Origin: Macrostomum hystrix
Taxonomy: Eukaryota > Animalia > Platyhelminthes
NCBI GenBank assembly: GCA_950097015.1
Contig: CATNEN010000003.1
Coordinates: forward strand, 10,664,001-10,728,000
Direction of reading: 5' to 3'
DNA length: 64,000 nucleotides
The notes below the pieces were generated by a model, which had not been told where the DNA came from, did not search any database, and was given only the letters and a program-made list of their open reading frames with translations. Below are positions 6,669 through 51,025 of the stretch, piece by piece (position 1 is the stretch's first letter; every line of letters starts with the position of its first letter). The translations under genes and the position numbers were made by a program.

Positions 6669-7889
6669 AATTAACAAGAAGCTGAGAAATTTTGTTGCAA
6701 TGCTTTCTGGGAATCTCTTGGGACTGCGTGTAGGTACTGGTTAGAAACTGTAGAACAATTGGAAATTAATTGAGAAGCTGGTGGATATGCGAGTCAATGC
6801 TTGATTGCTGATACAAAATAAGAACTCAAGAAACAAAATAGGAGTCGGTTTATTCTTCGGTTTTTTGGCATGCTATTATTTAGTAGAATATTCTAGAATC
6901 AAAAACTCAATTCTTTCAGCTCAGCAGTTAAGAAACGAATGATTAGTTTGCGATAAGAATTTTCGATAAGAATCAGGTTTAGCAGAAACGCCAAGAAATG
7001 TAAAGCAGAAGACACTAGCTGCTACAGGCCATGGCCCCACCACTGCTTTATCTAAGCAAACCCAGTGCTGACTTTGTGAAAATTTATTTTCGAGGCCGCT
7101 CACATTTTCACTTGAAGCAAATCATTTTTCAAGGCAAATTTGTTTACTTGTTGCTATGCAACTCTGAGGTCTTCGCTTAGGTTGACCTTTGAACTCCGTA
7201 GATAAAATCTGGGCAAAAAACAGTTTTTATGGCTTAAACTCTTCAGAAATTTCGTCGCAATATAGAGGCTGAATGCAAAAATACGCTCCGAAAGTAAATA
7301 GTTAATTAGACATTGTGCACACGCAATGTATAAAACATAAAATATGTGAATTCATGCAAACTGAAAACAAGAACAACAATTACCTTGCACTTGCACCCAT
7401 CAAGCCCCAGGCGCCTCTGGAGGCTGCGTACTATTGAAAATAAAACTCACATGGGATTCAAGAGTACATGTAGGAGGCAAGAACTCACAAATTCAGCTTC
7501 TGTGCTCACTAAGCAGCAGATGGTCTCAAATATCAGTACACTCGTCAGATTTTCACAACTAATTTTGCTATCGCGAACTATGATACACCAGCCACAGAAG
7601 AGCTTCCAGAGCCGATTCTGCTAGCTTGACTCTGATCTTTCTCAGGGCCCTCTAGCCAGTCTCAGTACCTTTCTTATGCCATATCCATCCTTGGAAAGTA
7701 ATTAAAATGTGTCTTCTAGTCGGCTTTTCATTGACTTGATCAATCGGCATCCCGGTTTAGGGTGACAAACACATGCAGCACTTGCGTAATCTTTATCCAC
7801 AAATGAGTTCACTCTTTACTGTTCCGCTTTGGTCTGAAAGTGGACACCGACTCATGTCCTCGAATACAAGTATCTGCTCGCCTTAGTCT

Positions 7890-8107
7890 CCACCTTGGTC
7901 TTGGCGATCTTCACCTTGGTCTTGGCGATCTTCACCTTGGTCTTGGCGATCTTCACCTTGGTCTTGGCGATCTTCACCTTGGTCTTGGCGATCTTCACCT
8001 TGGTCTTGGCGATCTTCACCTTGGTCTTGGCGATCTTCACCTTGGTCTTGGCGATCTTCACCTTGGTCTTGGCGATCTTCACCTTGGTCTTGGCGATCTT
8101 CACCTTG
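7890..8107 (+). repeat. Minisatellite, 21-bp unit (caccttggtcttggcgatctt), abutting the 3' end of the ANK-Mab21 CDS
   Basis: About 10 perfect tandem copies. Confidence 0.95.
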
Positions 8108-8112
8108 ACTGC

Positions 8113-10039
8113 TCAACCGGCAGACGGCACAGCTCGTGAGTGATTCTTCTCAACAGCCGCCGCAGCAGCTCCAGATCTCCAGATCGCCGCAGCCACCAGC
8201 AGCTCCTGCTTATCCGCATCCTCCCTCTGATCCACATCCCGGATCCAATCCTGATCGCTCCCGTTTCCTGCTGCTTTTAGCTCATTGCGAAGAGCCCGCA
8301 GCAGAGCGTCAAAGTTCAGGTAGAACCAGTTGCTGTGGTTCTTCATCCGCAGCGGAAAGCAGCCGGCAAAGACTTCGTGCTCAATCGGCAGCTTCGGTCG
8401 CTCGTCAAACCTGAAGCAGAATTTCCAGGCGGAGTCTCGGCTCCTCAGGTGCTGCCACACAAAGACCGCAGTGGCCTCACTCGCCGACCTCTCAGCTCCC
8501 CAATCGATGCCTCTGCTCGCACTGAACGGCCCGCAGTCGCTCACAACTCTCGCTGCACTGAGTCGGTCGCCGAACTTGAGGCAGGCCAGCGCTCTGAGAG
8601 ACTCTCGCGCTGATCGGGCGCAGTCTGGCAGTTTGTCGATCAGCTCTGCGAGACTCTGTCGGGACTGTGGGCTGCGGTCTCCATCGGACAGACGAAGCAC
8701 CGACTCTCTCACGATGTCGTAGATCTCGTGGAACTCGCATGTCTTGGCTTCTGACACGGGTCTGACTTGAAGAATCGGCAGGATGAGGAACGGGTGGAAG
8801 TGGAATCGGCCCGATTTGTTGACGGGTCGCAGACTGTCCTCGAACTGCAGCAGCAGCTGAGGCAGCTCAGCCATGGCGTCTCTCAATGCACCGGCTGCCC
8901 GATTCAACGCTTCGCTCACTCTCTCAGCTGATGTGGGCGACTTCAAGCCTTTCAGGTACACAGCGACATCGCTCAGGAAGAAGTGCTCCAGGATCCGACC
9001 GTCAGGTGTGTCTGATCTGCAGCCGCTCTCCACACCGTCAAGCAGTATCTGCAGCGAGCGTCTCGTGAGACTCACGAGATTCTCCGGCTTCCACTGCTCA
9101 GCCGGTGTCTCCTCCAGCATTCGGAACGTGACGGTCTTTGCGTGAAAGGACTTGAAGCCGACGTTTGAGATCTTCTTCTTCAGCAGCCACTTGAGTGTGA
9201 CGAACAGCTGGCCTTGCAGAGTGCTGAGACTCCGCAGCAGTCGCCTCTCCAGGAAGCTGCTGCTCACTCGGAGCTGCTGGCCCTCCATTCCGGGAGGAGC
9301 TGCGTGCACCACGTGACAGGGCGATGGGTCAGAGGTGAGGTCTCGCTGGAGTGACTGCAGCACGGACTGGGGGATGTTGGAGTTGGAGAGTCTTGGTGGC
9401 TGCAGCGGCGCGATGGGAGGGTAGCGGCAGAGGCGGCGGGCGGTGACTTCGTCCACAGCCGGTCTCAGGGCTGAGCCTCTCTGTGTCCGGGCTGGGTTGG
9501 AGGCTGGAGAAATGGGAAATGCGAGAAATATTGCAAATGCCTCCAGCTTTCAACTCTCAGAAAACAGAAAAATGTGTTTCTTTTCCTTGTTTGTTGTTTC
9601 CTTTAGAAAGCCAAAGAAGTTGAGCAAGTCAAACACATGCTCAATTCTTGTCCCAGCAATCCCGACAGTCTCTGGAAGGAAATTCTCACCGAATCCGGAG
9701 ATCAGGATGTGGCCGTTGCTGAGCTCCACTGTCTGAGCAGCCTCCACTCGGTCGCACTCGCACACATCTCTCGGGTGAAACTGCCTTTCTGGAATCAGCT
9801 GAGTGACATCGATGTCAGAGTCGATGTCAGTTCCGCCATCCAGAGAGACCAGGCTGTTGCCCCAGGCCTCAGAGAAGCTGCCTTGAATATGCATGCCCTC
9901 ATCCTTCATTCTCTTCCTAAGAGCATCCTGCAAGACGTCAGCCACAGCGATCTGCAAGGCGGCTCTGGAGTCCACGAATCCCGACTGACAGAGCTTGAAG
10001 TGCAGCTGCTGGCTCAGCTCTGCGTCGCTGGGTGCGGAT
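8113..10039 (-). CDS. Mab-21/cGAS-like NTase portion (exons 2-3 of the gene above)
   Basis: The pol-beta-type motif [10 protein letters not shown]...DSDIDVT is present, with a candidate third acid in RPAVDEV. Mab-21 C-lobe motifs [23 protein letters not shown]...EQW and LEHFFL correspond to the WRxSFSxxE, SYHLKT and PHYF motifs of this family. Confidence 0.8.
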
Positions 10040-13000
10040 CTGAAGGGTGAGAGGAGGCGGCAGCGCTGAGTTTCAGTGAGGCTGGGAGGCTCTGAAGGGT
10101 GAGAGGAGGCGGCAGCGCTGAGTTTCAGTGAGGCTGGGAGGCTCTGAAGGGTGAGAGGAGTAGTGAAAGCGGTTTTCAAACTTCTATGAAATTCCCTTGC
10201 TCAAATGTGCCATGCTTAATAACATTTCCCAGTAACATTTTGCCAGTTTAGACAGTGAAGTTTTGTGGTTAGCGTTTTCTCTTGAAGCAGGGAGCATACT
10301 TTAAAACTCTCCAGGAAGTAGGACACGATCTCAGATAGACAAAATGTTTCAGAAAAATTATTAGAGATGAGCAGGTTGTGTCTCCAAGTAAGAAAATGGC
10401 ACCTTTGATTGCATTGAGCTCGCATTGCAGATGCAGATGCGCCATTCAATGAGCCTCGTCAGCTGCACAACTATCCCGCGCAAAAAATTATTTCTTATAA
10501 TTATTATAAGGACATGTAAAAGAAGACATACCTTATGCTGGTTTGCTGCTTCAATGATTGGCGATCGCCCAGTTGTAGACCTTCGACCACCTCATCGTGT
10601 CCGACTTCAATGGCGCAATCTAATGCCAACTCAGATGAGACAGGACGACCTTGAGCTGCATGGGCTTCGCGCAGCAGCTTAACAACCGTTTTGTGGTCGT
10701 TCTGTAAGGCAATGTGGAGAGGTGATAGGCCATAATTTGTTTGAAGACTGACGTCGGCTCCTGCTTGAATGAGTGAGCGAGCCACCTCATGATGGCCATT
10801 TTGTGAGGCAATGTAGAGAGGTGACGCGCCACGAACTTTCTCTGGAAGATTGACGTCAGCTCCTGCTTGAATGAGTGAGCGAGCCACCTCATTATGACCG
10901 TTTTCTGAGGCAAAGAAGAGTGGTGATTGGCCAGAATTTATTTGAAGATTGACGTCGGCTCCTGCTTGAATGAGCGAGCGAGCCAACTCATGATGGCCAT
11001 TTTCTGAGGCCATGTGGAGGGGTGATGCGCCTTGAACTTTCGTTTCAAGGTTGACGTCGGCTCCTGCTTGAATGAGTGAGCGAGCCACCTTATGATAGCC
11101 TTCTATTGAGGCAATGTAGAGAGGTGAGAAGCCATTATCTTTCTTTTGAAGGTTGACGTCAGCTCCTGCTTGAATGAGTGAGCGAGCCACCTCATCATCG
11201 CCGTGTTGTGAGGCAATGTGGAGAGGTGATGAGCCAGAATTTGTTTGAAGATTGACGTCGGCTCCTGCTTGAATTAGTGAGCGAACCACCTCATGACGGC
11301 CGAAATGTGAGGCAATGAAGAGAGGTGATGCGCCTTGAACTTTCTCTTGAAGATTGACGTCGGCTCCGGCTTGAATGAGTGAGCGAGCCACCTTATGATG
11401 GCCTTCGTGTGAGGCAATGTAGAGAGGTGACTCGCCAGAATTTCTTTGAATATTGACGTCGGCTCCTGCTTGAATGAGTGAGCGAGCCATCTCATGATGG
11501 CCTTCTTGTGAGGCAATGTAGAGAGGTGACTCGCCAGAATTTGTTTGAAGACTGACGTCGGCTCCTGCTTGAATGAGTGAGCGAGCCACCTCATGATGGC
11601 CATTTTGTGAGGCAATGTAGAGAGGTGACGCGCCACGAACTTTCTCTGGAAGATTGACGTCAGCTCCTGCTTGAATGAGTGAGCGAGCCACCTCATGATG
11701 GCCTTTTTGTGAGGCAATGTAGAGAGGTGAGCAGCCATATTTTTTCTCTTGAAGATTTAGGTCAGCTCCTGCTTGAATGAGTGAGCGAGCCACCTCATTA
11801 TGACCGTTTTCTGAGGCAAAGAAGAGTGGTGATTGGCCAGAATTTATTTGAAGATTGACGTCGGCTCCTGCTTGAATGAGCGAGCGAGCCAACTCATGAT
11901 GGCCATTTTCTGAGGCCATGTGGAGGGGTGATGCGCCTTGAACTTTCGTTTCAAGGTTGACGTCGGCTCCTGCTTGAATGAGTGAGCGAGCCACCTTATG
12001 ATAGCCTTCTATTGAGGCAATGTAGAGAGGTGAGAAGCCATTATCTTTCTTTTGAAGGTTGACGTCAGCTCCTGCTTGAATGAGTGAGCGAGCCACCTCA
12101 TCATCGCCGTGTTGTGAGGCAATGTGGAGAGGTGATGAGCCAGAATTTGTTTGAAGATTGACGTCGGCTCCTGCTTGAATTAGTGAGCGAGCCACCTCAT
12201 GACGGCCGAAATGTGAGGCAATGAAGAGAGGTGATGCGCCTTGAACTTTCTCTTGAAGATTGACGTCGGCTCCGGCTTGAATGAGTGAGCGAGCCACCTC
12301 ATGATGGCCTTCGTGTGAGGCAATGTAGAGAGGTGACTCGCCAGAATTTCTTTGAATATTGACGTCGGCTCCTGCTTGAATGAGTGAGCGAGCCACCTCA
12401 TGATGACCGTTTTGTGAGGCAATGTAGAGAGGTGAATTCCCTTGAACTTTCTCTTGAAGATTGACGTCAGCTCCTGCTTGAATGAGTGAGCGAGCCACCT
12501 CATGATGGCCTTTTTGTGAGGCAATGTAGAGAGGTGAGCAGCCATATTTTTTCTCTTGAAGATTTAGGTCAGCTCCTGCTTGAATGAGTGAGCGAGCCAC
12601 CTCATTATGACCGTTTTCTGAGGCAAAGAAGAGTGGTGATTGGCCAGAATTTATTTGAAGATTGACGTCGGCTCCTGCTTGAATGAGCGAGCGAGCCAAC
12701 TCATGATGGCCATTTTCTGAGGCCATGTGGAGGGGTGATGCGCCTTGAACTTTCGTTTCAAGGTTGACGTCGGCTCCTGCTTGAATGAGTGAGCGAGCCA
12801 CCTTATGATAGCCTTCTATTGAGGCAATGTAGAGAGGTGAGAAGCCATTATCTTTCTTTTGAAGGTTGACGTCAGCTCCTGCTTGAATGAGTGAGCGAGC
12901 CACCTCATCATCGCCGTGTTGTGAGGCAATGTGGAGAGGTGATGAGCCAGAATTTGTTTGAAGATTGACGTCGGCTCCTGCTTGAATTAGTGAGCGAGCC

Positions 13001-13845
13001 ACCTCATGACGGCCGAAATGTGAGGCAATGAAGAGAGGTGATGCGCCTTGAACTTTCTCTTGAAGATTGACGTCGGCTCCGGCTTGAATGAGTGAGCGAG
13101 CCACCTTATGATGGCCTTCGTGTGAGGCAATGTAGAGAGGTGACTCGCCAGAATTTCTTTGAATATTGACGTCGGCTCCTGCTTGAATGAGTGAGCGAGC
13201 CACCTCATGATGACCGTTTTGTGAGGCAATGTAGAGAGGTGAATTCCCTTGAACTTTCTCTTGAAGATTGACGTCGGCTCCTGCTTGAATGAGTGAGCGA
13301 GCCACCTCATGATGACCGTTTTGTGAGGCAATGTAGAGAGGTGAATTCCCTTGAACTTTCTCTTGAAGATTGACGTCGGCTCCTGCTTGAATGAGTGAGC
13401 GAGCCACCTCATGATGACCGTTTTGTGAGGCAATCCAGAGAGGTGAGGCGCCCTGGTGTTGCTGAATGTTGATGTCGGCTTGTGCTCTGATGAGCGAATC
13501 CACAAGCTGCTGATAACCATTTCGTGATGCAATCCACAATGCCGTGGTTCCTCTCCAGTGCTGCTTGTCTACATCCGCCCTGCCGTGGATGAGTCTTATC
13601 AGGATGTCGTGTCTTCCGAATTCGCACGCAAGCATCGCTGGGGTATAAAATGTGCCTCTAAACGCAACGAAGGCGTCGATGCTCTTGCCACTGGCAATGA
13701 TCCGATCTACTGAGGCCACGTCGTCGTCCCTGATGGCAGCCAGCAGCTCCTCGTCAGTGAGTGACGCTTGTTGCTTCTCTTCAGGAAGCAGTGAGTTCAT
13801 CAGGAAAAGCACGACTCGTGAGAGCAAATTCAGAAAGGGGAACAT
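8113..13845 (-). CDS. Ankyrin-repeat + Mab-21/cGAS-like nucleotidyltransferase protein (candidate cGLR), 3 exons, ~1684 aa
   Basis: join complement(13845..10532, 10039..9690, 9503..8113). Intron 1: ATAAG|gtatgt ... cccttcag|ATCC, phase 2. Intron 2: TTCG|gtgaga ... tttctccag|CCTCC, phase 1. Total 5055 nt, open frame. Confidence 0.8.
10040..10160 (-). repeat. 52-bp tandem repeat that triplicates a splice acceptor
   Basis: Unit ccttcagagcctcccagcctcactgaaactcagcgctgccgcctcctctcac, ~2.3 copies on the minus strand. Confidence 0.85.
10532..13845 (-). CDS. Ankyrin-repeat exon (~30 repeats; exon 1 of the gene above)
   Basis: 33-34-aa repeats of the form [30 protein letters not shown]. The start could be Met1 (13845) or the second Met (13800). 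Confidence 0.95.
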
Positions 13846-14160
13846 TTTGCAAGGTGCGGTAAGCGATTCGATTTTCGATTGCAGCCAAATTAGTTTAGGC
13901 TCCCACCAAATAGCAGTATTTATAATTCTGCTCAGCCAATAAGAAGCCTTTCAGAGTTGCTTCTCTGCTCCGAGTTGCTCATTGGTTGTTGGCGAGAAGC
14001 TGCTATTGCTGGCGATATTTCATTTCTGTCTTATTTCTGTCTAAAAGGCGAGAATTCCGTTAACAAGTGAGAATTCTGAGAATAGGATTCTGATCGATAT
14101 GCGAAAAGAAAAAAATGTGATGGTGGGAATGCGTTTTTAACAAATGAGAATATTCAATAC

Positions 14161-14695
14161 CAGGTGAGAATTCTGTCTAACAGGTGAGAATTCTGTCTAT
14201 CAGGTGAGAATTCTGTCTATCAGGTGAGAATTCTGTCTAACAGGTGAGAATTCTGTCTAACAGGTGAGAATTCTGTCTATCAGGTGAGAATTCTGTCTAA
14301 CAGGTGAGAATTCTGTCTAGCAGGTGAGAATTCTGTCTATCAGGTGAGAATTCTGTCTAACAGGTGAGAATTCTGTCAATCAGGTGAGAATTCTGTCTAT
14401 CAGGTGAGAATTCTGTCTATCAGGTGAGAATTCTGTCTAACAGGTGAGAATTCTGTCTATCAGGTGAGAATTCTGTCTAACAGGTGAGAATTCTGTCTAG
14501 CAGGTGAGAATTCTGTCTAACAGGTGAGAATTCTGTCTAACAGGTGAGAATTCTGTCTATCAGGTGAGAATTCTGTCTATCAGGTGAGAATTCTGTCTAG
14601 CCGGTGAGAATTCTGCCTATCAGGTGAGAATTCTGTCTAACAGGTGAGAATTCTGTCAATCAGGTGAGAATTCTGTCTATCAGGTGAGAATTCTG
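14161..14695 (+). repeat. Minisatellite, 20-bp unit (caggtgagaattctgtctaw)
   Basis: About 27 tandem copies. Confidence 0.95.
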
Positions 14696-15015
14696 TTCAA
14701 CTGGTAAGGCTTATTTACTGAAAATATTCAGTCCTAGTGTCAGGGCTCAGGCACTCACAATAGCAGTCAGGTTCCAATAATTATCTTCTCTTGATGGAAT
14801 GATTTGACGAGACAGAAAAAATTAGCTTTTAATTTAAGCTAAATTAATTGATAATAGGATGATTGAGTTGGGCCCAAAGGAAGACACTGTTAATGAAAAT
14901 AAGAAGAGGAATATAAAGTACTCAAAATACTCGTATTTACTTTCTAAAATATTGTGACGTTTATAAACTTTATATTTCTATTTTTTGGTTCCAATTTTGT
15001 AATTCAGTATGAAAT

Positions 15016-16400
15016 TAGCTGGTTGAGCTAGAGCAGTCTCTATGAACGTAGCTGGATGAGCTAGAGCAGTCTCTATGACCGTAGCTGGTTGAGCTAGAAC
15101 AGTCTCAATGACTGTAGATGGATGAGCTAGAACAGTCTCTATGACCGTAGCTGGATGAGCTAGAACAGTCTCTATGACCGTAGCTGGATGAGCTAGAACA
15201 GTCTCTATGACTGAAGATGGATGAGCTGTTGCTATGACCGTAGCTGGATGAGCTAGAGCAGTCTCTATGACCGTAGCTGGATGAGCTAGAACAGTCTCTA
15301 TGACCGTAGCTGGATGAGCTAGAGAAGTCTCTATGACCATAGCTGGATGAGCTAGAGCAGTCTCTATGACCATAGCTGGATGAGCTAGAGCAGTCTCTAT
15401 GACCATAGCTGGTTGAGCTAGAGCAGTCTCTATGAACGTAGCTGGTTGAGCTAGAGCAGTCTCTATGAACGTAGCTGGTTGAGCTAGAGCAGTCTCTATG
15501 AACGTAGCTGGTTGAGCTAGAGCAGTCTCTATGAACGTAGCTGGTTGAGCTAGAGCAGTCTCTATGAACGTAGCTGGATGAGCTAGAGCAGTCTCTATGA
15601 CCGTAGCTGGTTGAGCTAGAACAGTCTCAATGACTGTAGATGGATGAGCTAGAACAGTCTCTATGACCGTAGCTGGATGAGCTAGAGCAGTCTCTATGAC
15701 CGTAGCTGGATGAGCTAGAGCAGTCTCTATGACCGTAGCTGGATGAGCTAGAACAGTCTCTATGACCGTAGCTGGATGAGCTAGAACAGTCTCTATGACT
15801 GAAGATGGATGAGCTGTTGCTATGACCGTAGCTGGATGAGCTAGAGCAGTCTCTATGACCGTAGCTGGATGAGCTAGAGCAGTCTCTATGACCGTAGCTG
15901 GATGAGCTAGAACAGTCTCTATGACTGAAGATGGATGAGCTGTTGCTATGACCGTAGCTGGATGAGCTAGAGCAGTCTCTATGACCGTAGCTGGTTGAGC
16001 TAGAACAGTCTCTATGAACGTAGCTGGTTGAGCTAGAACAGTCTCAATGACTGTAGATGGATGAGCTAGAGCAGTCTCTATGACCGTAGCTGGTTGAGCT
16101 AGAACAGTCTCTATGAACGTAGCTGGTTGAGCTAGAACAGTCTCAATGACTGTAGATGGATGAGCTAGAGCAGTCTCTATGACCGTAGCTGGTTGAGCTA
16201 GAACAGTCTCTATGACCGTAGCTGGTTGAGCTAGAACAGTCTCAATGACTGTAGATGGATGAGCTAGAACAGTCTCTATGACCGTGGCTGGTTGAGCTAG
16301 AAAAGTCTCTATGACTGTAGATGGATGAGCACCTACTATGACCGTAGCTGGATGAGCACTTACTATGACTGTAGATGGATGAGCAGTTTGTATGACTGTC
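15016..16400 (+). repeat. Minisatellite, 33-bp unit (gagctagagcagtctctatgaccgtagctggat)
   Basis: About 42 tandem copies with a few shorter variants. Confidence 0.95.
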
Positions 16401-16863: not shown

Positions 16864-17160
16864 TCATTTAAACATGATAGTTACCATGCCACACTCCACC
16901 TCGACACTCTTCACTCCATGCTCGACAGTACAATTGTTGTGTGCATCTCCTGAGTCGGAAGGCAGTGTTGTCTCAGAGTTGCAAGCGACACTGGTCGACG
17001 AGGAGCCCTGCACCACTCCTGATACCAGCAGCATTGTTTGGCTAGAGAGCCCAATGTAGCGCTCCAAAGCAGCAGATGTGTGACCTGTGACTCGACCGAT
17101 TTCAGCCCGCTCTAGGCCAGCGTCGCAGAGCCGTTGCCCACGTCTTCCGTATTCCGTAGA
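16864..17160 (-). pseudogene. Tyrosine recombinase C-terminal remnant (Crypton/DUF3504-like)
   Basis: Across one frameshift the sequence reads YGIRKTWAT-x-LCDAGLERAEIGRVTGHTSAALERY. This matches YR box II (HxxRxTxATxL..aG.....I...tGHxS......Y), with the first His replaced by Tyr. Confidence 0.65.
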
Positions 17161-18840
17161 GAGCCGTAGCCTCCATGATGCACTTTGCCTCATTGATTTT
17201 CACAGTCGCCGCTCGCAGCTTGCCTAGCACCACTTCCCCGATGTTCTCCAGCTCTGCACGGGACACCGCTCCCACGAAGACGCCATCCTGGTACACAATG
17301 ACGCTCGGGTGCTCACCCAGCAGCTTCTCCATCTCACGCTGAAACACCGAAGGAGAGACCTTAATGCCGTACGGCAGGCGGTTGAATCGGTAGCAGCCGA
17401 ACGGCGTGTTGATGGTGGTGGTGTCCTTGGACTCGTCCTCCAGCGGAATCTGATAGTAGACGTCAGAAAGGTCCAGTCGGCAGAACAGCTTCTTGTTGGC
17501 CATCTTGGAGAATGCGGTCTCAATTGACGGGGTTAGGTACGTTTGATCCTGCACCCACTGATTGACCACCGTGTAGTCTCCACAGATCCGCACCGACACC
17601 TTGTCCGACTTCACGGTCACCACGATCGGGCTGCCCCACTCAGACGAGGTTACCTTCTTGACTATTCCCGCCTTGTCCATCAGGTCCAGCTCCTTCTTCA
17701 CTAACGGCCGCAAAGCCAACGGCAGCTCGCGGGCTGGTTGAAAAATCGGCCGAGCTCCTGCCTTCAACCGAATCTCTCCTAGGGCTCCCTTGACGCCCAA
17801 CAGACTCTCATACCTGTTGTTGCTGGCTGGCCCCGCCTCGTTCGAATGGTGCGCTGGCAGCGAGCTCAACAGGTCCCTGCCGAGCAATCCGAACTTCTTC
17901 TGGCAGTCAATAACAGGCAGCTCCGCCGCGGTGAAACAGCCGTCAGAGCCATCAGTCTCCAGAAGGCACTCCAGGATGCCGATCTGCTTCATCACATGGC
18001 CGTCATAAGCCAGCATCCGTGACTTCACTGACTTTAGTGGCGGCCTTCCAAGATCCTCCCGGATCCTTTTCGAGATTAACGAGCACAAGGCGCCGCTGTC
18101 CTTCTCCATCTTCACCTGCTTGCTGTTCGCACCATGTAGAAGGCGGCCGGGCTGCCCTCGCCGCAGTAGAACACCGGATCGTCGCGGGTCACTACTGAGA
18201 CGGCACCCTTGGCTTCGGTCGGTGTGGCGAAGTGAGTCCTGGCGCTCCGACAGACCTTGGCGAAGTGGCCGTGTTTCCCGCACTGATTGCAGGTGGCCTT
18301 CAGGGCCCAGCAGTCAGTTGGCCGGCCATGTGACATTCGGCCGCAGCGCTGGCAGCTTTGAGCCTCATTCGGCTGCCTCTGCTTCCACTTCTGAACTGCA
18401 TTCACGCTATCCACTTCTAGCTCCTTTGCTGGCATCTCAGGTGTCAAGCTATCCATCTGGTGCACCGTGGAGTCCAGCGCAGCTGAGGCCCCTGACGAGA
18501 AAGTGCTCAACATCTGAAGCTGCTGAACATAGTCGGTGATCTGGTCGACTGATAACACAGCCGTGACCTCGCGCTCGAGAACCTTGCTCCTGACGTCATG
18601 ATTGTTAAGGCCGGCGATGAGTCGCATCTTGACCAGCTGCTCTGCTGGGTCAACGTCCTTGTCCTTCAGCTTTTCAAACTCGCACGCCACATCCTGTTCT
18701 CGAAGACGGGCGGCAAATCCGGCTATGGTCTCACCCTCGCCCTGGCGCAGGGACATGAAGGCCGCTCTCTCTCTGCGATCAACAGCCTCTTCTGCGGTTC
18801 CAGAAACTTTACGAGACTCGACTTGATGTCGTTCCACTTC
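17161..18840 (-). mobile_element. Decayed Ty3/Gypsy (Mag-like) LTR retrotransposon gag-pol fragment
   Basis: Gag carries two Zn knuckles (CQRCGRMSH...C, CNQCGKHGHFAKVC). Also present: protease KDSGA and RT motifs (WGSPIVV, RICGDY, LDLSDVYYQI, TPFGCYRFNRLPYGI). YxDD is mutated to YQDG, there is a frameshift near 18130, and no RNase H, integrase or LTR pair was found. Confidence 0.9.
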
Positions 18841-48700: not shown

Positions 48701-50296
48701 CCCTCCTGATTCTAACCTCCTGATTCTACCCTCCTGATTCTGCCCTCCTTATTTTACCCTCCTGATTCTACCCTCCCGATTCTACCCTCCTGATTCTACC
48801 CTCCCGATTCTACCCTCCTGATTCTACCCTCCTGATTCTACCCTCCTTATTTTACCCTCCTCATTCTACCCTTCCGATTCTACCCTCCCGATTCTACCCT
48901 CCCGATTCTACCCTCCTGATTCTACCCTCCCAGTTCTACCCTGATTCCTGTAGGCTGTTTAGTAAAGTAAGCCAGTAAAAATGTAAATAATCTAGAATTT
49001 TGTTATACTCTTTTGTCTGTCTCCTGGAAACCGTATAGCTGGTCATTGTCCCATCTGATTTCCTATTTCTTCCCTTCTGGCTCAGTTCTATGAGGTCAAC
49101 TGCGCAATTCCCAGCTTTTCATTTGATCAGAACTGCGCAATATTTTTGTGGAAAGCTTTCGCTATGGCCGATAACATGCCCGGTACACAGTGAGGTGAGA
49201 TTTCGGCCTAAAGTACAAACCGATTAAGTAAATATTGCCAAATTCGGAGCCAAAATGCATACAAAAATCATTTCGCAAAGGAGTGATTCATAGAAAAAAA
49301 TGAGTCATTAGAGTGCGAAGTTCATTGCTACACTGTTGATATCATATTTAGCATTTAATTGGTTGCATAAAGAAGGCTATGCATGACAATATGAAACACT
49401 CGTTACATTGTACTGATGTACTTTTAGCACTCTGAATAAAATTGGCCTCTATTCAAATCCGCCCCTTACCAATTAGAATCTGCCCCTTCCCTACTAGAAT
49501 CCGCCCCTTCCCTATTAGAATCTGCCCCTTCCCTATAAGTATCCGCCCCTTCCTTATTAGAATCTGCCCCTTCCCTATTAGAATCCGCCCCTTCCCTATT
49601 AGAATCTGCCCCTTCCCTATTAGAATCCTCCTGTTCCCTATTAGAATCTGCCCTTTCCCTAATAGAATCCGCCCCTTCCCTATTAGAATCCGCCCCTTCC
49701 CTATTAGAATCCGCCCCTTCCCAATTAGAATCCACCCCTTCGCTATTAGAATCCGCCCCTTCCCTATTAGAATCCGCCCCTTCCCTACTAGAATCCGCCC
49801 CTTCCCTATTAGAATCCGCCCCTTCCCTATTAGAATCCGCCCCTTCCCTATTAGAATCCGCCCCTTCCCTATTAGAATCTGCCCCTTCTCAATTAGAATC
49901 CGCCCCTTTTCAATTCGAAATTCTTACACTTTTATCCAATAGTGCGCGTCCATTTCCCTTTAAAAAAGCGGAAGCCAAAGAAGCTGTCGACATACCTGGC
50001 AGGAACATATTGAGCGTCTGGCATTTGTTGAAGCGGCAATACTGGCAGTGAGTTCTCGTCTCCTTGGTGATCTCGCAGCGGCCAGCCTTGCTGCAGCTGT
50101 ACTTGGCCACGCCGTGCAGCATCCCGGCTCTGGAGGACCGGATGAAGAATTTCTTGCAGGCCTCGCAAACGAAAGCTCCGCAATGGAATCCGGCTGCCGT
50201 GTCGCCGCAGACGTCACAGGGACGGCTCTCGGCCGCTTTGAACAGGCTTTGCTCGTTGGGATCGGATTTTATTGCGAATGATTTTTGCCGATGCAA

Positions 50297-50335
<39 letters not shown>

Positions 50336-50875
50336 TTGCTGCTGTTGCTGTGGAGGGGGAGGTGGCAGCGGTACTAGCGGTGGCGGCGGCGGCTGCTGCT
50401 GCTGATAATGCTGATGCTGTAGCTGAAGCTGCTGCTGCTGTTGCTGATGATGGTAAGGCTGCAGATGATGGTCTTGAAGGTAGGTCTGGTGATAGTTTTC
50501 AGTTAAATAAATTGCAGAAGAATCCTGGCTGAGATGCTGCTGCTGGTGCTGATGATGCATGCTGGCAGAATGCTGCAGACACTGCTGCTGATAAGACAGT
50601 GGCAGCTGATTATCAAACGGTCCGATGCACTCCGATGTTGAAGAAACTGCAGCCGCTGCTGCCGCTGCTGCTGCGGCTACATTGTAAACTTCGTCATCTG
50701 AGACGTAAGTAGTCAACTGCTGCTGCTGCTGCTGCTGATGTGGCAAAAATCCATTAGCAACATTGTAGCCTAGATACACTTGAGTATTCACATTGTGATC
50801 AGAAGTGGGCCACGTTGTGTCGGCTGGTACACAGCTGGGCTTCACATCAACTGCTGCTCGAGACTGCTCAGGACT

Positions 50876-50908
<33 letters not shown>

Positions 50909-51025
50909 AGCTAATGCAAAGTAGCTGTGCGTCCCAACTAGATTGGCGTCGACTGACTTGGTAGAAAAGGTATCTGGCTGCTGCTGCTGCTGTTGCAGTG
51001 CAGGCGAGCAGGCAGTCATCATCAT
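40304..51025 (-). CDS. Nuclear receptor with two tandem DNA-binding domains (2DBD-NR), 6 coding exons, ~779 aa
   Basis: join complement(51025..49996, 45223..45117, 44647..44500, 42422..41613, 41133..41038, 40452..40304); all GT-AG, phases consistent, 2340 nt. DBD1: [28 protein letters not shown]...[12 protein letters not shown]2: [27 protein letters not shown]...CKSCRFAKC. Then hinge [11 protein letters not shown] signature [11 protein letters not shown] and AF-2-like LLNELW. Confidence 0.9.
40501..40988 (+). repeat. Intronic minisatellite, 20-bp unit (caggagagtaatcagggtst)
   Basis: About 24 copies. Confidence 0.95.
41258..41525 (+). repeat. Intronic degenerate ~21-bp repeat (gagaaacaaakactggtagagt-like)
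   Basis: Tandem units, including a duplicated ~105-bp block. Confidence 0.75.
42772..43040 (-). mobile_element. tRNA-derived SINE, family 2 (most complete copy)
   Basis: Head ggttgtggcctagtggctagagcg...ggttcgattcccg has A and B boxes. The body (ttgcttcagttcacccagctgttaaatggg...cagtccatggactgaacag) is shared with copies at 45276 and 60264. Confidence 0.8.
43826..44495 (+). repeat. Intronic minisatellite, 16-bp unit (cccgtgtctcatctct)
   Basis: About 42 copies running up to the splice donor at 44499. Confidence 0.95.
44741..45080 (+). repeat. Intronic minisatellite, 20-bp unit (tctaacaggtaaacacccag)
   Basis: About 17 near-perfect copies in the intron that splits DBD2. Confidence 0.95.
45276..45445 (-). 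mobile_element. SINE family 2, truncated and internally deleted copy
   Basis: Shares ttgggccagat...tgctggtacccatttaacagctgg.tgaactgaa...gcagagtt...gaatcgaa.cccc.gacct with 42772..43040. Confidence 0.7.
46290..46710 (+). repeat. GA-rich low-complexity tract
   Basis: Almost purely purine sequence. Confidence 0.9.
47740..48945 (+). repeat. Minisatellite, 14-bp unit (gattctaccctccy)
   Basis: About 85 copies. Confidence 0.95.
49455..49910 (+). repeat. Minisatellite, 21-bp unit (ttagaatccgccccttcccta)
   Basis: About 21 copies. Confidence 0.95.

Follow-up and report, generated by a model that had tools for sequence, protein, structure and literature searches.

The 64,000-nucleotide stretch of the Macrostomum hystrix genome examined here (assembly GCA_950097015.1, contig CATNEN010000003.1, positions 10,664,001 to 10,728,000; hereafter the window) holds three open reading frames (ORFs) on its minus strand, at 10504..13845 (1113 aa), 9550..10179 and 8113..9456, which are best explained as a single, structurally intact gene of three exons. 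Running from 13845 to 8113, the gene is predicted to encode a cytosolic protein of ~1,684 residues in which a long array of ankyrin (ANK) repeats precedes a cGAS-like receptor (cGLR) enzyme. It would be one member of a very large ANK-cGLR family, for which a receptor role is the likeliest mechanism; we place the probability of this overall reading at about 0.72. The cGLRs are a major family of animal pattern-recognition receptors, most of whose ligands are unknown, and the clearest pointer to the sensing of ligands other than nucleic acids by some cGLRs comes from fusions to repeat domains.

A previous sequence-only reading of this DNA had proposed that the three ORFs are linked by two canonical, phase-matched introns into one frame of ~1684 aa, and all of these elements were present on the minus strand (Table 1). 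Intron 1 has the donor AAG/GTATGT at 10532/10531 and the acceptor ttcAG/A at 10040/10039, and intron 2 has the donor TTCG/GTGAG at 9690/9689 and the acceptor tctccAG/CC at 9504/9503. The phases match at both introns, two bases plus one giving an arginine codon across intron 1 and one plus two an alanine codon across intron 2, and the frames entered after the introns are the long ORF frames of exons 2 and 3. The sum of 1104+1+116+1+462 = 1684 codons is stop-free. Furthermore, intron 2 sits at the same place in paralogues that are as little as ~50% identical, their matches stopping at residue 116 (searches with the window protein were made exon by exon). A second in-frame ATG lies 15 codons after the start ATG of exon 1. 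The alignment with the M. lignano protein P0026 begins at its residue 6, which pairs with residue 27 of the window protein; a further N-terminal domain is therefore not expected in the latter.

Table 1. Exons and introns of the predicted ANK-cGLR gene, in window coordinates.
Feature	Position	Strand	Description
Exon 1	10532..13845	(-)	ATG at 13845; short N-terminal segment, 29-30 ankyrin repeats, capping/linker tail; phase 2 end AAG/GT
Intron 1	10040..10531	(-)	GT..AG, 492 nt
Exon 2	9690..10039	(-)	linker, N-terminal spine helix, predicted first half of cGAS-like nucleotidyltransferase core
Intron 2	9504..9689	(-)	GT..AG, 186 nt
Exon 3, first part	8836..9503	(-)	predicted remainder of nucleotidyltransferase core with third catalytic Asp, and Mab-21 C-lobe
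Exon 3, second part	8113..8835	(-)	family-specific C-terminal domain, 240 aa; stop codon 8113-8115

On structural modelling, exon 2 together with the first 222 codons of exon 3 is a cGAS/Mab-21 nucleotidyltransferase (NTase). Exon 2 supplies G53-S54 at 9882-9877 and the D75-I-D77-V motif, with D75 at 9816-9814 and D77 at 9810-9808, and the third aspartate is codon 17 of exon 3 (V16-D17-E18, within AVDEV) at 9453-9451. The 57 residues between D77 and D17 fit the spacing [DE]h[DE]h X50-90 h[DE]h, the published catalytic motif being G-[SG], [DE]h[DE]h, X50-90, h[DE]h (supplementary legend of Li et al., 2023, PMC9980059). The G-S, D-x-D and third Asp positions are retained in ~45 of 50 family sequences, in addition to the window. 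Conservation of the catalytic columns extends over ~90% of a family in which divergence has taken identity below 30%. The motif that the sequence-only reading had picked out (GS...SDID followed by AVDEV) is intact, and its assignment to an NTase agrees with the fold comparison described below.

The fold was tested on the M. lignano protein P0001 as a proxy, which shares 70% identity with exon 3 and whose alignment spans exons 2 and 3. The AlphaFold2 (AF2) model of P0001 (pLDDT 91.2, pTM 0.88) placed G164/S165, D186/D188 and D244 on the expected strands, and its top Foldseek matches were all cGAS or Cv-cGLR1 (E 4e-7). Alignment of P0001 residues 114-447 with human cGAS residues 162-521 using VIA-align gave a Z of 19.5 and a root-mean-square deviation of 3.4 over 265 residues, with Z of 19.2 against MB21D2 and 18.7 against Cv-cGLR1. 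The model thus shares the bilobed NTase fold of the cGAS, Cv-cGLR1 and MB21D2 structures (7ftr, 4k9b, 8gjw, 7lt1; Z 18.7-19.5, 265-286 residues aligned). The G-S loop, the D-x-D on strand 2 and, on the core strand that follows, the third Asp are common to the cGAS/cGLR structures and the family, as are the C-lobe motifs S-[YF]-H-x-K-T and W-x-x-x-N-L. The differences from cGAS, Cv-cGLR1 and MB21D2 are a sequence identity of 12-21%, a near-neutral core in the window enzyme, additional N-terminal ankyrin and C-terminal helical parts, and no visible counterpart of the cGAS zinc thumb.

Sequence searches on their own identified the enzyme part only weakly, and it is the structural comparison that decides its identity. 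Exon 3 alone matched its relatives at E 4e-183, an observation far beyond chance, and against the PDB its sequence reached cGAS at E 0.13. A family profile free of ankyrin repeats (A2) matched only cGLR1 (E 1.5e-4) and cGAS in the PDB; it replaced a profile that included the repeats (A1), which was swamped by ankyrin matches and useless. Separately, an H-x4-C-x-C...G-H pattern (H-P-R-D-V-C-E-C ... N-G-H) at window 9690-9780 lies between the NTase core strands and is kept in the close subfamily. It may be a metal site; its position is unlike that of the cGAS zinc thumb.

Splicing was examined in contigs from four public runs of one study (X5-X8). These contigs drop rare variants, so the absence of a sequence from them is not demonstrable. 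Exons 2 and 3 were covered at 91-99% identity with a depth of about zero in both introns and, because the introns are missing, the contigs are presumed to be cDNA. Intron 2 was skipped exactly, 9503 being joined directly to 9690, as loose ends in X7 and X8 and as joints in X5 and X6. Contigs leaving the 5' end of exon 2 at the predicted acceptor run into the 3' ends of paralogue ANK ORFs with an exact match to the genome, namely those of L008 (...PEKQN, donor CAG/GTAGGA) and L012 (...SGQSLYG), with GT next in each. In paralogue transcripts, therefore, an ANK exon is spliced to that of the enzyme at the very acceptor that was predicted. Three paralogues have a canonical donor after their ankyrin ORF: in L008 and L012 its relative position matches that in the window, and L013 has the ORF tail of the window gene. 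Likewise, in M. lignano proteins including P0001 and P0002 the last ankyrin repeat is followed without interruption by the sequence of exon 2 and then by that of exon 3. The proposal that the ORFs splice into one gene was hence upheld for intron 2, and the fused arrangement for paralogues and M. lignano proteins, but the ANK-to-enzyme junction was not seen for the window copy. At the window locus itself, the union of ANK and cGLR in one polypeptide is predicted from the canonical phase-matched splice sites and from the identical layout of the neighbour L013.

In the genome (220 Mb in 42 contigs), pieces resembling exon 3 number at least 95 and those resembling exon 2 at least 138, almost all of them stop-free, which answers the call of the sequence-only reading for a count of paralogues. 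The pieces form clusters on several contigs, C3, C18, C38 and C1 among them. A search of a 1.8-billion-protein library returned 139 matches, and all 16 of the relatives scanned (M. lignano, 29-71% identity) combine ANK with Mab-21_C. Every named relative is from Macrostomum lignano, the highest identity being 70-71% to exon 3, in agreement with the earlier assignment of the DNA to a probable flatworm. In two of the M. lignano proteins, P0079 and P0173, a caspase domain (Peptidase_C14) at the C-terminus accompanies the Mab-21 domain and the ankyrin repeats, and their predicted architecture suggests a direct effector fusion inside the ANK-cGLR family.

The estimate of ~30 ankyrin repeats was borne out, 30 Ank stretches being detected in exon 1 by Pfam (Ank E 7.5e-241; Ank_2 1155 bits) and 29 by our separate repeat parsing, in units of 33/34 aa. 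Tandem Repeats Finder (TRF) reported a period of 102 with 27.4 copies in the ankyrin-coding region, and most of the array consists of three near-identical copies of an eight-repeat block. Variation falls at the loop and first-helix positions, which form the canonical binding face, and the framework is almost invariant. The comparison with an inverted neighbour paralogue ~73 kb away (L013:3182-9890 (+), equivalent to C3:10746181-10752889, with a 1425-aa ankyrin ORF) is instructive. L013 has the same three-exon layout, N-terminus and type of exon 1 tail as the window gene; 126 of 130 N-terminal residues are identical and the enzymes are 90-91% identical. The arrays, however, comprise 29 repeats in the window gene against 39 in L013, and only one binding-face signature is common to the two, out of 13 and 24, respectively.

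The last 240 residues form a further domain that is conserved across the ANK-cGLR family. Its AF2 model (pLDDT 84.1, pTM 0.85) is mostly helical with a small sheet. Foldseek returned no match at E<=0.001 and the ESM Atlas no usable one. A relationship to TPR or 14-3-3-like helical repeats was rejected, the best VIA Z of 7.9 being below what is meaningful for helical folds, as was one to DUF5691, for which the Pfam match was sub-threshold only; no Pfam family scored above its cut-off. As modelled, the domain is family-specific and without a clear structural relative.

In the mechanism we favour, the ankyrin array, with its fast-changing binding-face residues and repeat number, would bind a ligand, protein or other; binding would switch on the attached enzyme, and its product, a nucleotide second messenger, would be read by a downstream receptor, a STING-like family being one candidate. 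The strength of the case differs between these parts. The enzyme is probably active, and a sensor function for the ankyrin array is possible at a little under even odds. The nature of the messenger and of its receptor, as well as expression of the window copy, enter the scheme as suppositions. The suggestion of the sequence-only reading that the array senses a protein or ligand accordingly stands as a plausible role that it may have. Three indirect arguments favour a ligand other than a nucleic acid: the ankyrin binding face turns over fast; the enzyme core of the window is close to neutral, with net charges of -10 in exon 2 and +7 in the core part of exon 3, as against a pI (isoelectric point) above 8.5 for nucleic-acid-sensing cGLRs (Li et al., 2023, PMC9980059); and flatworm enzymes are not among the described actives after a screen with double-stranded DNA (dsDNA) and poly I:C.

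Whether STING is present had been raised as a check, and a divergent STING-like family of at least 12 genes was found, clustered at C2 8.96-9.10 Mb with others on C7, C38 and C39. Its match in Pfam stayed below threshold: L007:1000-2010 (-), equivalent to C2:9104028-9105038, scored 25.0 bits (E 1.4e-5) against the STING ligand-binding domain (LBD; PF15009), just under the cut-off of 27. With its relatives L018-L026, a PF15009 match at E<=0.01 was obtained for 6 of 10 family members. The best PDB matches of the STING-like profile were invertebrate STINGs at E ~1e-3, mainly over the first LBD helix. The large protein library search yielded no homologue of the STING-like candidate, and an Atlas match to a Ras/Roc cluster, at 0.76 only, was disregarded. 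The family is one candidate receptor for the messenger. A fuller version of the mechanism, which we regard as tentative and on the doubtful side, holds that the ankyrin arrays are rapidly diversifying sensors of a Macrostomum-specific immune repertoire of well over 100 ANK-cGLRs, that they gate second-messenger synthesis (possibly via the C-terminal helical domain), and that the expanded STING-like family reads the product.

Several results weigh against an intact and active ANK-cGLR in the window. Concerning the enzyme, exon 3 scored 15.3 bits against Pfam Mab-21_C (PF20266), below the cut-off of 24.1; exon 2 had no Pfam match, Mab-21 (PF03281) included; and the Tyr of the near-invariant S-Y-H motif is Phe in the window copy. 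We ascribe the low Mab-21_C score to the limited sensitivity of the profile. The fold comparison recovered cGAS, and farther relatives lie above the cut-off (P0048 at 38.4 bits, P0046 at 32.6 bits). No activity has been shown for any ANK-cGLR family member, and the 15 active enzymes described come from groups that do not include flatworms (Li et al., 2023, PMC9980059). Concerning transcripts, the X5-X8 contigs were taken as RNA-derived from the absence of introns alone, the run type not being on record. Moreover, depth was 0 over the copy-specific exon 1 tail (10532-10700) and no contig in these runs crossed 10532/10039, so the ANK-to-enzyme junction was seen in paralogues only and not for the window locus.

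The remaining adverse points concern this particular copy. A 52-bp tandem repeat at 10039-10160 (TRF; 2.3 copies, 100% identical) spans the intron 1 acceptor and triples its motif; of the three resulting acceptors the proximal one alone preserves the reading frame, and the two that compete with it are out of frame. Paralogues of exon 3 are up to 98% identical to the window copy in DNA, and 14 differences separate the best-covered exon 3 contig from the window, all 14 of the letters private to the window copy being absent from that contig. At those differences the contig agrees with paralogues, at 13 of 14 for L005 and L006 and at 9-11 for the others checked. An attempt to assign the X5-X8 contigs to the window copy consequently failed: they resemble paralogues and, with paralogues so nearly identical and the private letters missing, they are not assignable to it. 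The private differences fall in 13 codons, 10 of them nonsynonymous, the Tyr-to-Phe change in S-Y-H included, and 3 synonymous. The dN/dS of the window copy against four paralogues was 0.69-0.83, compared with 0.33-0.75 among other paralogues, and in the enzyme core it was ~1 for two pairs of window copy and paralogue. On these sequence comparisons, the window copy, though intact, may be under relaxed constraint.

Among the alternatives, the one that survives best retains an active enzyme but has it triggered by nucleic acid at the enzyme domain, the ankyrin array serving as a scaffold, localisation module or effector dock. We consider it unlikely, though a serious contender. The characterised cGLR ligands are all dsDNA or double-stranded RNA (Li et al., 2023, PMC9980059), ankyrin repeats are commonly scaffolds, and the enzyme domains of some family members are basic, with a pI of up to 9.9. 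The charge of the window core argues the other way, as do the M. lignano catalytic domains that were given poly I:C and dsDNA and are not among the described active enzymes; five such domains of this family were screened, as fragments starting at the enzyme domain (Li et al., 2023, PMC9980059). In addition, fast turnover of the binding face between near-identical paralogues suits recognition better than scaffolding.

It is improbable, to a somewhat greater degree, that the family is real but the window copy, a recent duplicate, is on its way to becoming a pseudogene, being unexpressed, poorly expressed or spliced out of frame. The zero depth over its unique exon 1 tail, the lack of its private letters from every contig, the excess of nonsynonymous private changes with raised dN/dS, and the perfect acceptor triplication with its two frame-breaking sites all fit such a course, and the nearby paralogue C3:10739963-10741285 already has a TGA. 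Against this, the copy retains 1,684 codons without stop or frameshift, canonical splice sites and all of its catalytic residues, contigs of this kind lose rare variants in any case, and a high dN/dS is also usual in young immune-receptor paralogues.

A Mab-21 domain that is non-catalytic and mediates protein-protein interactions only, as in Mab21L1/2/3, is very unlikely. The weak similarity to the Pfam Mab-21 models and the lack of a demonstrated product for any member are in keeping with it; yet Mab21L1/2/3, which have the superfamily fold in common with this family, are not predicted to have a functional active site (Li et al., 2023, PMC9980059), whereas here the catalytic residues persist through the divergence of the family described above. 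Two separate genes, for an ankyrin protein and a stand-alone cGLR, are barely credible even though the junction was unseen at the window locus and stand-alone enzymes make up 87% of cGLRs (Li et al., 2023, PMC9980059), as exon 2 has no ATG ahead of the spine helix, its frame is entered exactly at the phase-matched acceptor, canonical donors follow the ankyrin ORFs of L008, L012 and L013, and the paralogue transcripts and M. lignano proteins are fused.

The preferred reading, that of an intact ANK-cGLR gene with a receptor function, describes a type of protein that is already in the literature, and the novelty implied by the sequence-only reading was overstated. Li et al. (2023, Cell; preprint PMC9980059) noted that some cGLRs carry ankyrin or TPR modules, suggested a protein- or ligand-interaction role for these, and tabulated Ank_2 domains in M. 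lignano PAA45980.1, PAA68676.1 and PAA86972.1. One of these, PAA45980.1, falls in the same 90% cluster as P0057, a match from our search for relatives. As in the window, these fusions unite N-terminal ankyrin repeats and a cGAS-like NTase with the catalytic motif in one polypeptide, and the window gene is a further member of the type. It differs from them in its longer array of 29-30 repeats, and its identity to M. lignano proteins does not exceed 71%. Li et al. (2023) do not take up the activity of these ANK fusions, the expansion in flatworms or the C-terminal domain conserved in the family, and our literature search found no paper whose main text treats Macrostomum together with cGAS, cGLR or STING. 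The literature searched contained no account of how large the expansion is, of the conserved C-terminal domain or of the STING-like family.

The layout had also been likened to that of an NLR. The coupling of a long, fast-evolving repeat array to a signalling module, in a gene family that is greatly expanded and clustered, supports the comparison as an analogy only, as no NACHT or NB-ARC match was found by Pfam in any of the three ORFs. NLRs possess this ATPase, and the output here would be a small-molecule signal rather than oligomerisation-driven recruitment.

On its own the single window gene, one of many copies and only possibly expressed, adds little. The very large, clustered and fast-evolving ANK-cGLR family, together with a possible STING-like family, makes the question of non-nucleic-acid sensing by cGLRs testable in flatworms, and Macrostomum is a flatworm model amenable to transgenesis and RNA interference. 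To our knowledge, no repeat-domain cGLR fusion has been characterised so far, and cGLR and STING signalling are generally regarded as lost from the flatworm phylum. If the ankyrin arrays do act as sensors, this would be the first cGLR class to sense a non-nucleic-acid ligand via an appended repeat domain; if the STING-like family also reads the product, Macrostomum would have a cGLR-STING-type system with all its parts, although its phylum is usually described as having none.

Minor features of the locus were also recorded. TATAAA-like (13919-13924) and CCAAT-like (~13985-13995) motifs on the minus strand, 75-150 bp upstream of the ATG, are consistent, as consensus resemblances only, with a gene start at exon 1. 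Minisatellites flank the gene at 7887-8107, 14180-14300 and 14978-15406; a 21-bp unit in 10.5 copies closely follows the stop codon on its 3' side, 20-bp repeats precede the start and a repeat-encoded ORF lies further upstream. Reverse-transcriptase ORFs adjoin both the window gene (17102-18283 (-), Pfam RVT_1 E 2e-18) and its neighbour (L013:1325-2508 (-)). Elsewhere in the window, the ORF 49910-51025 (-) contains a C4 nuclear-receptor zinc finger (PF00105, E 1e-18).

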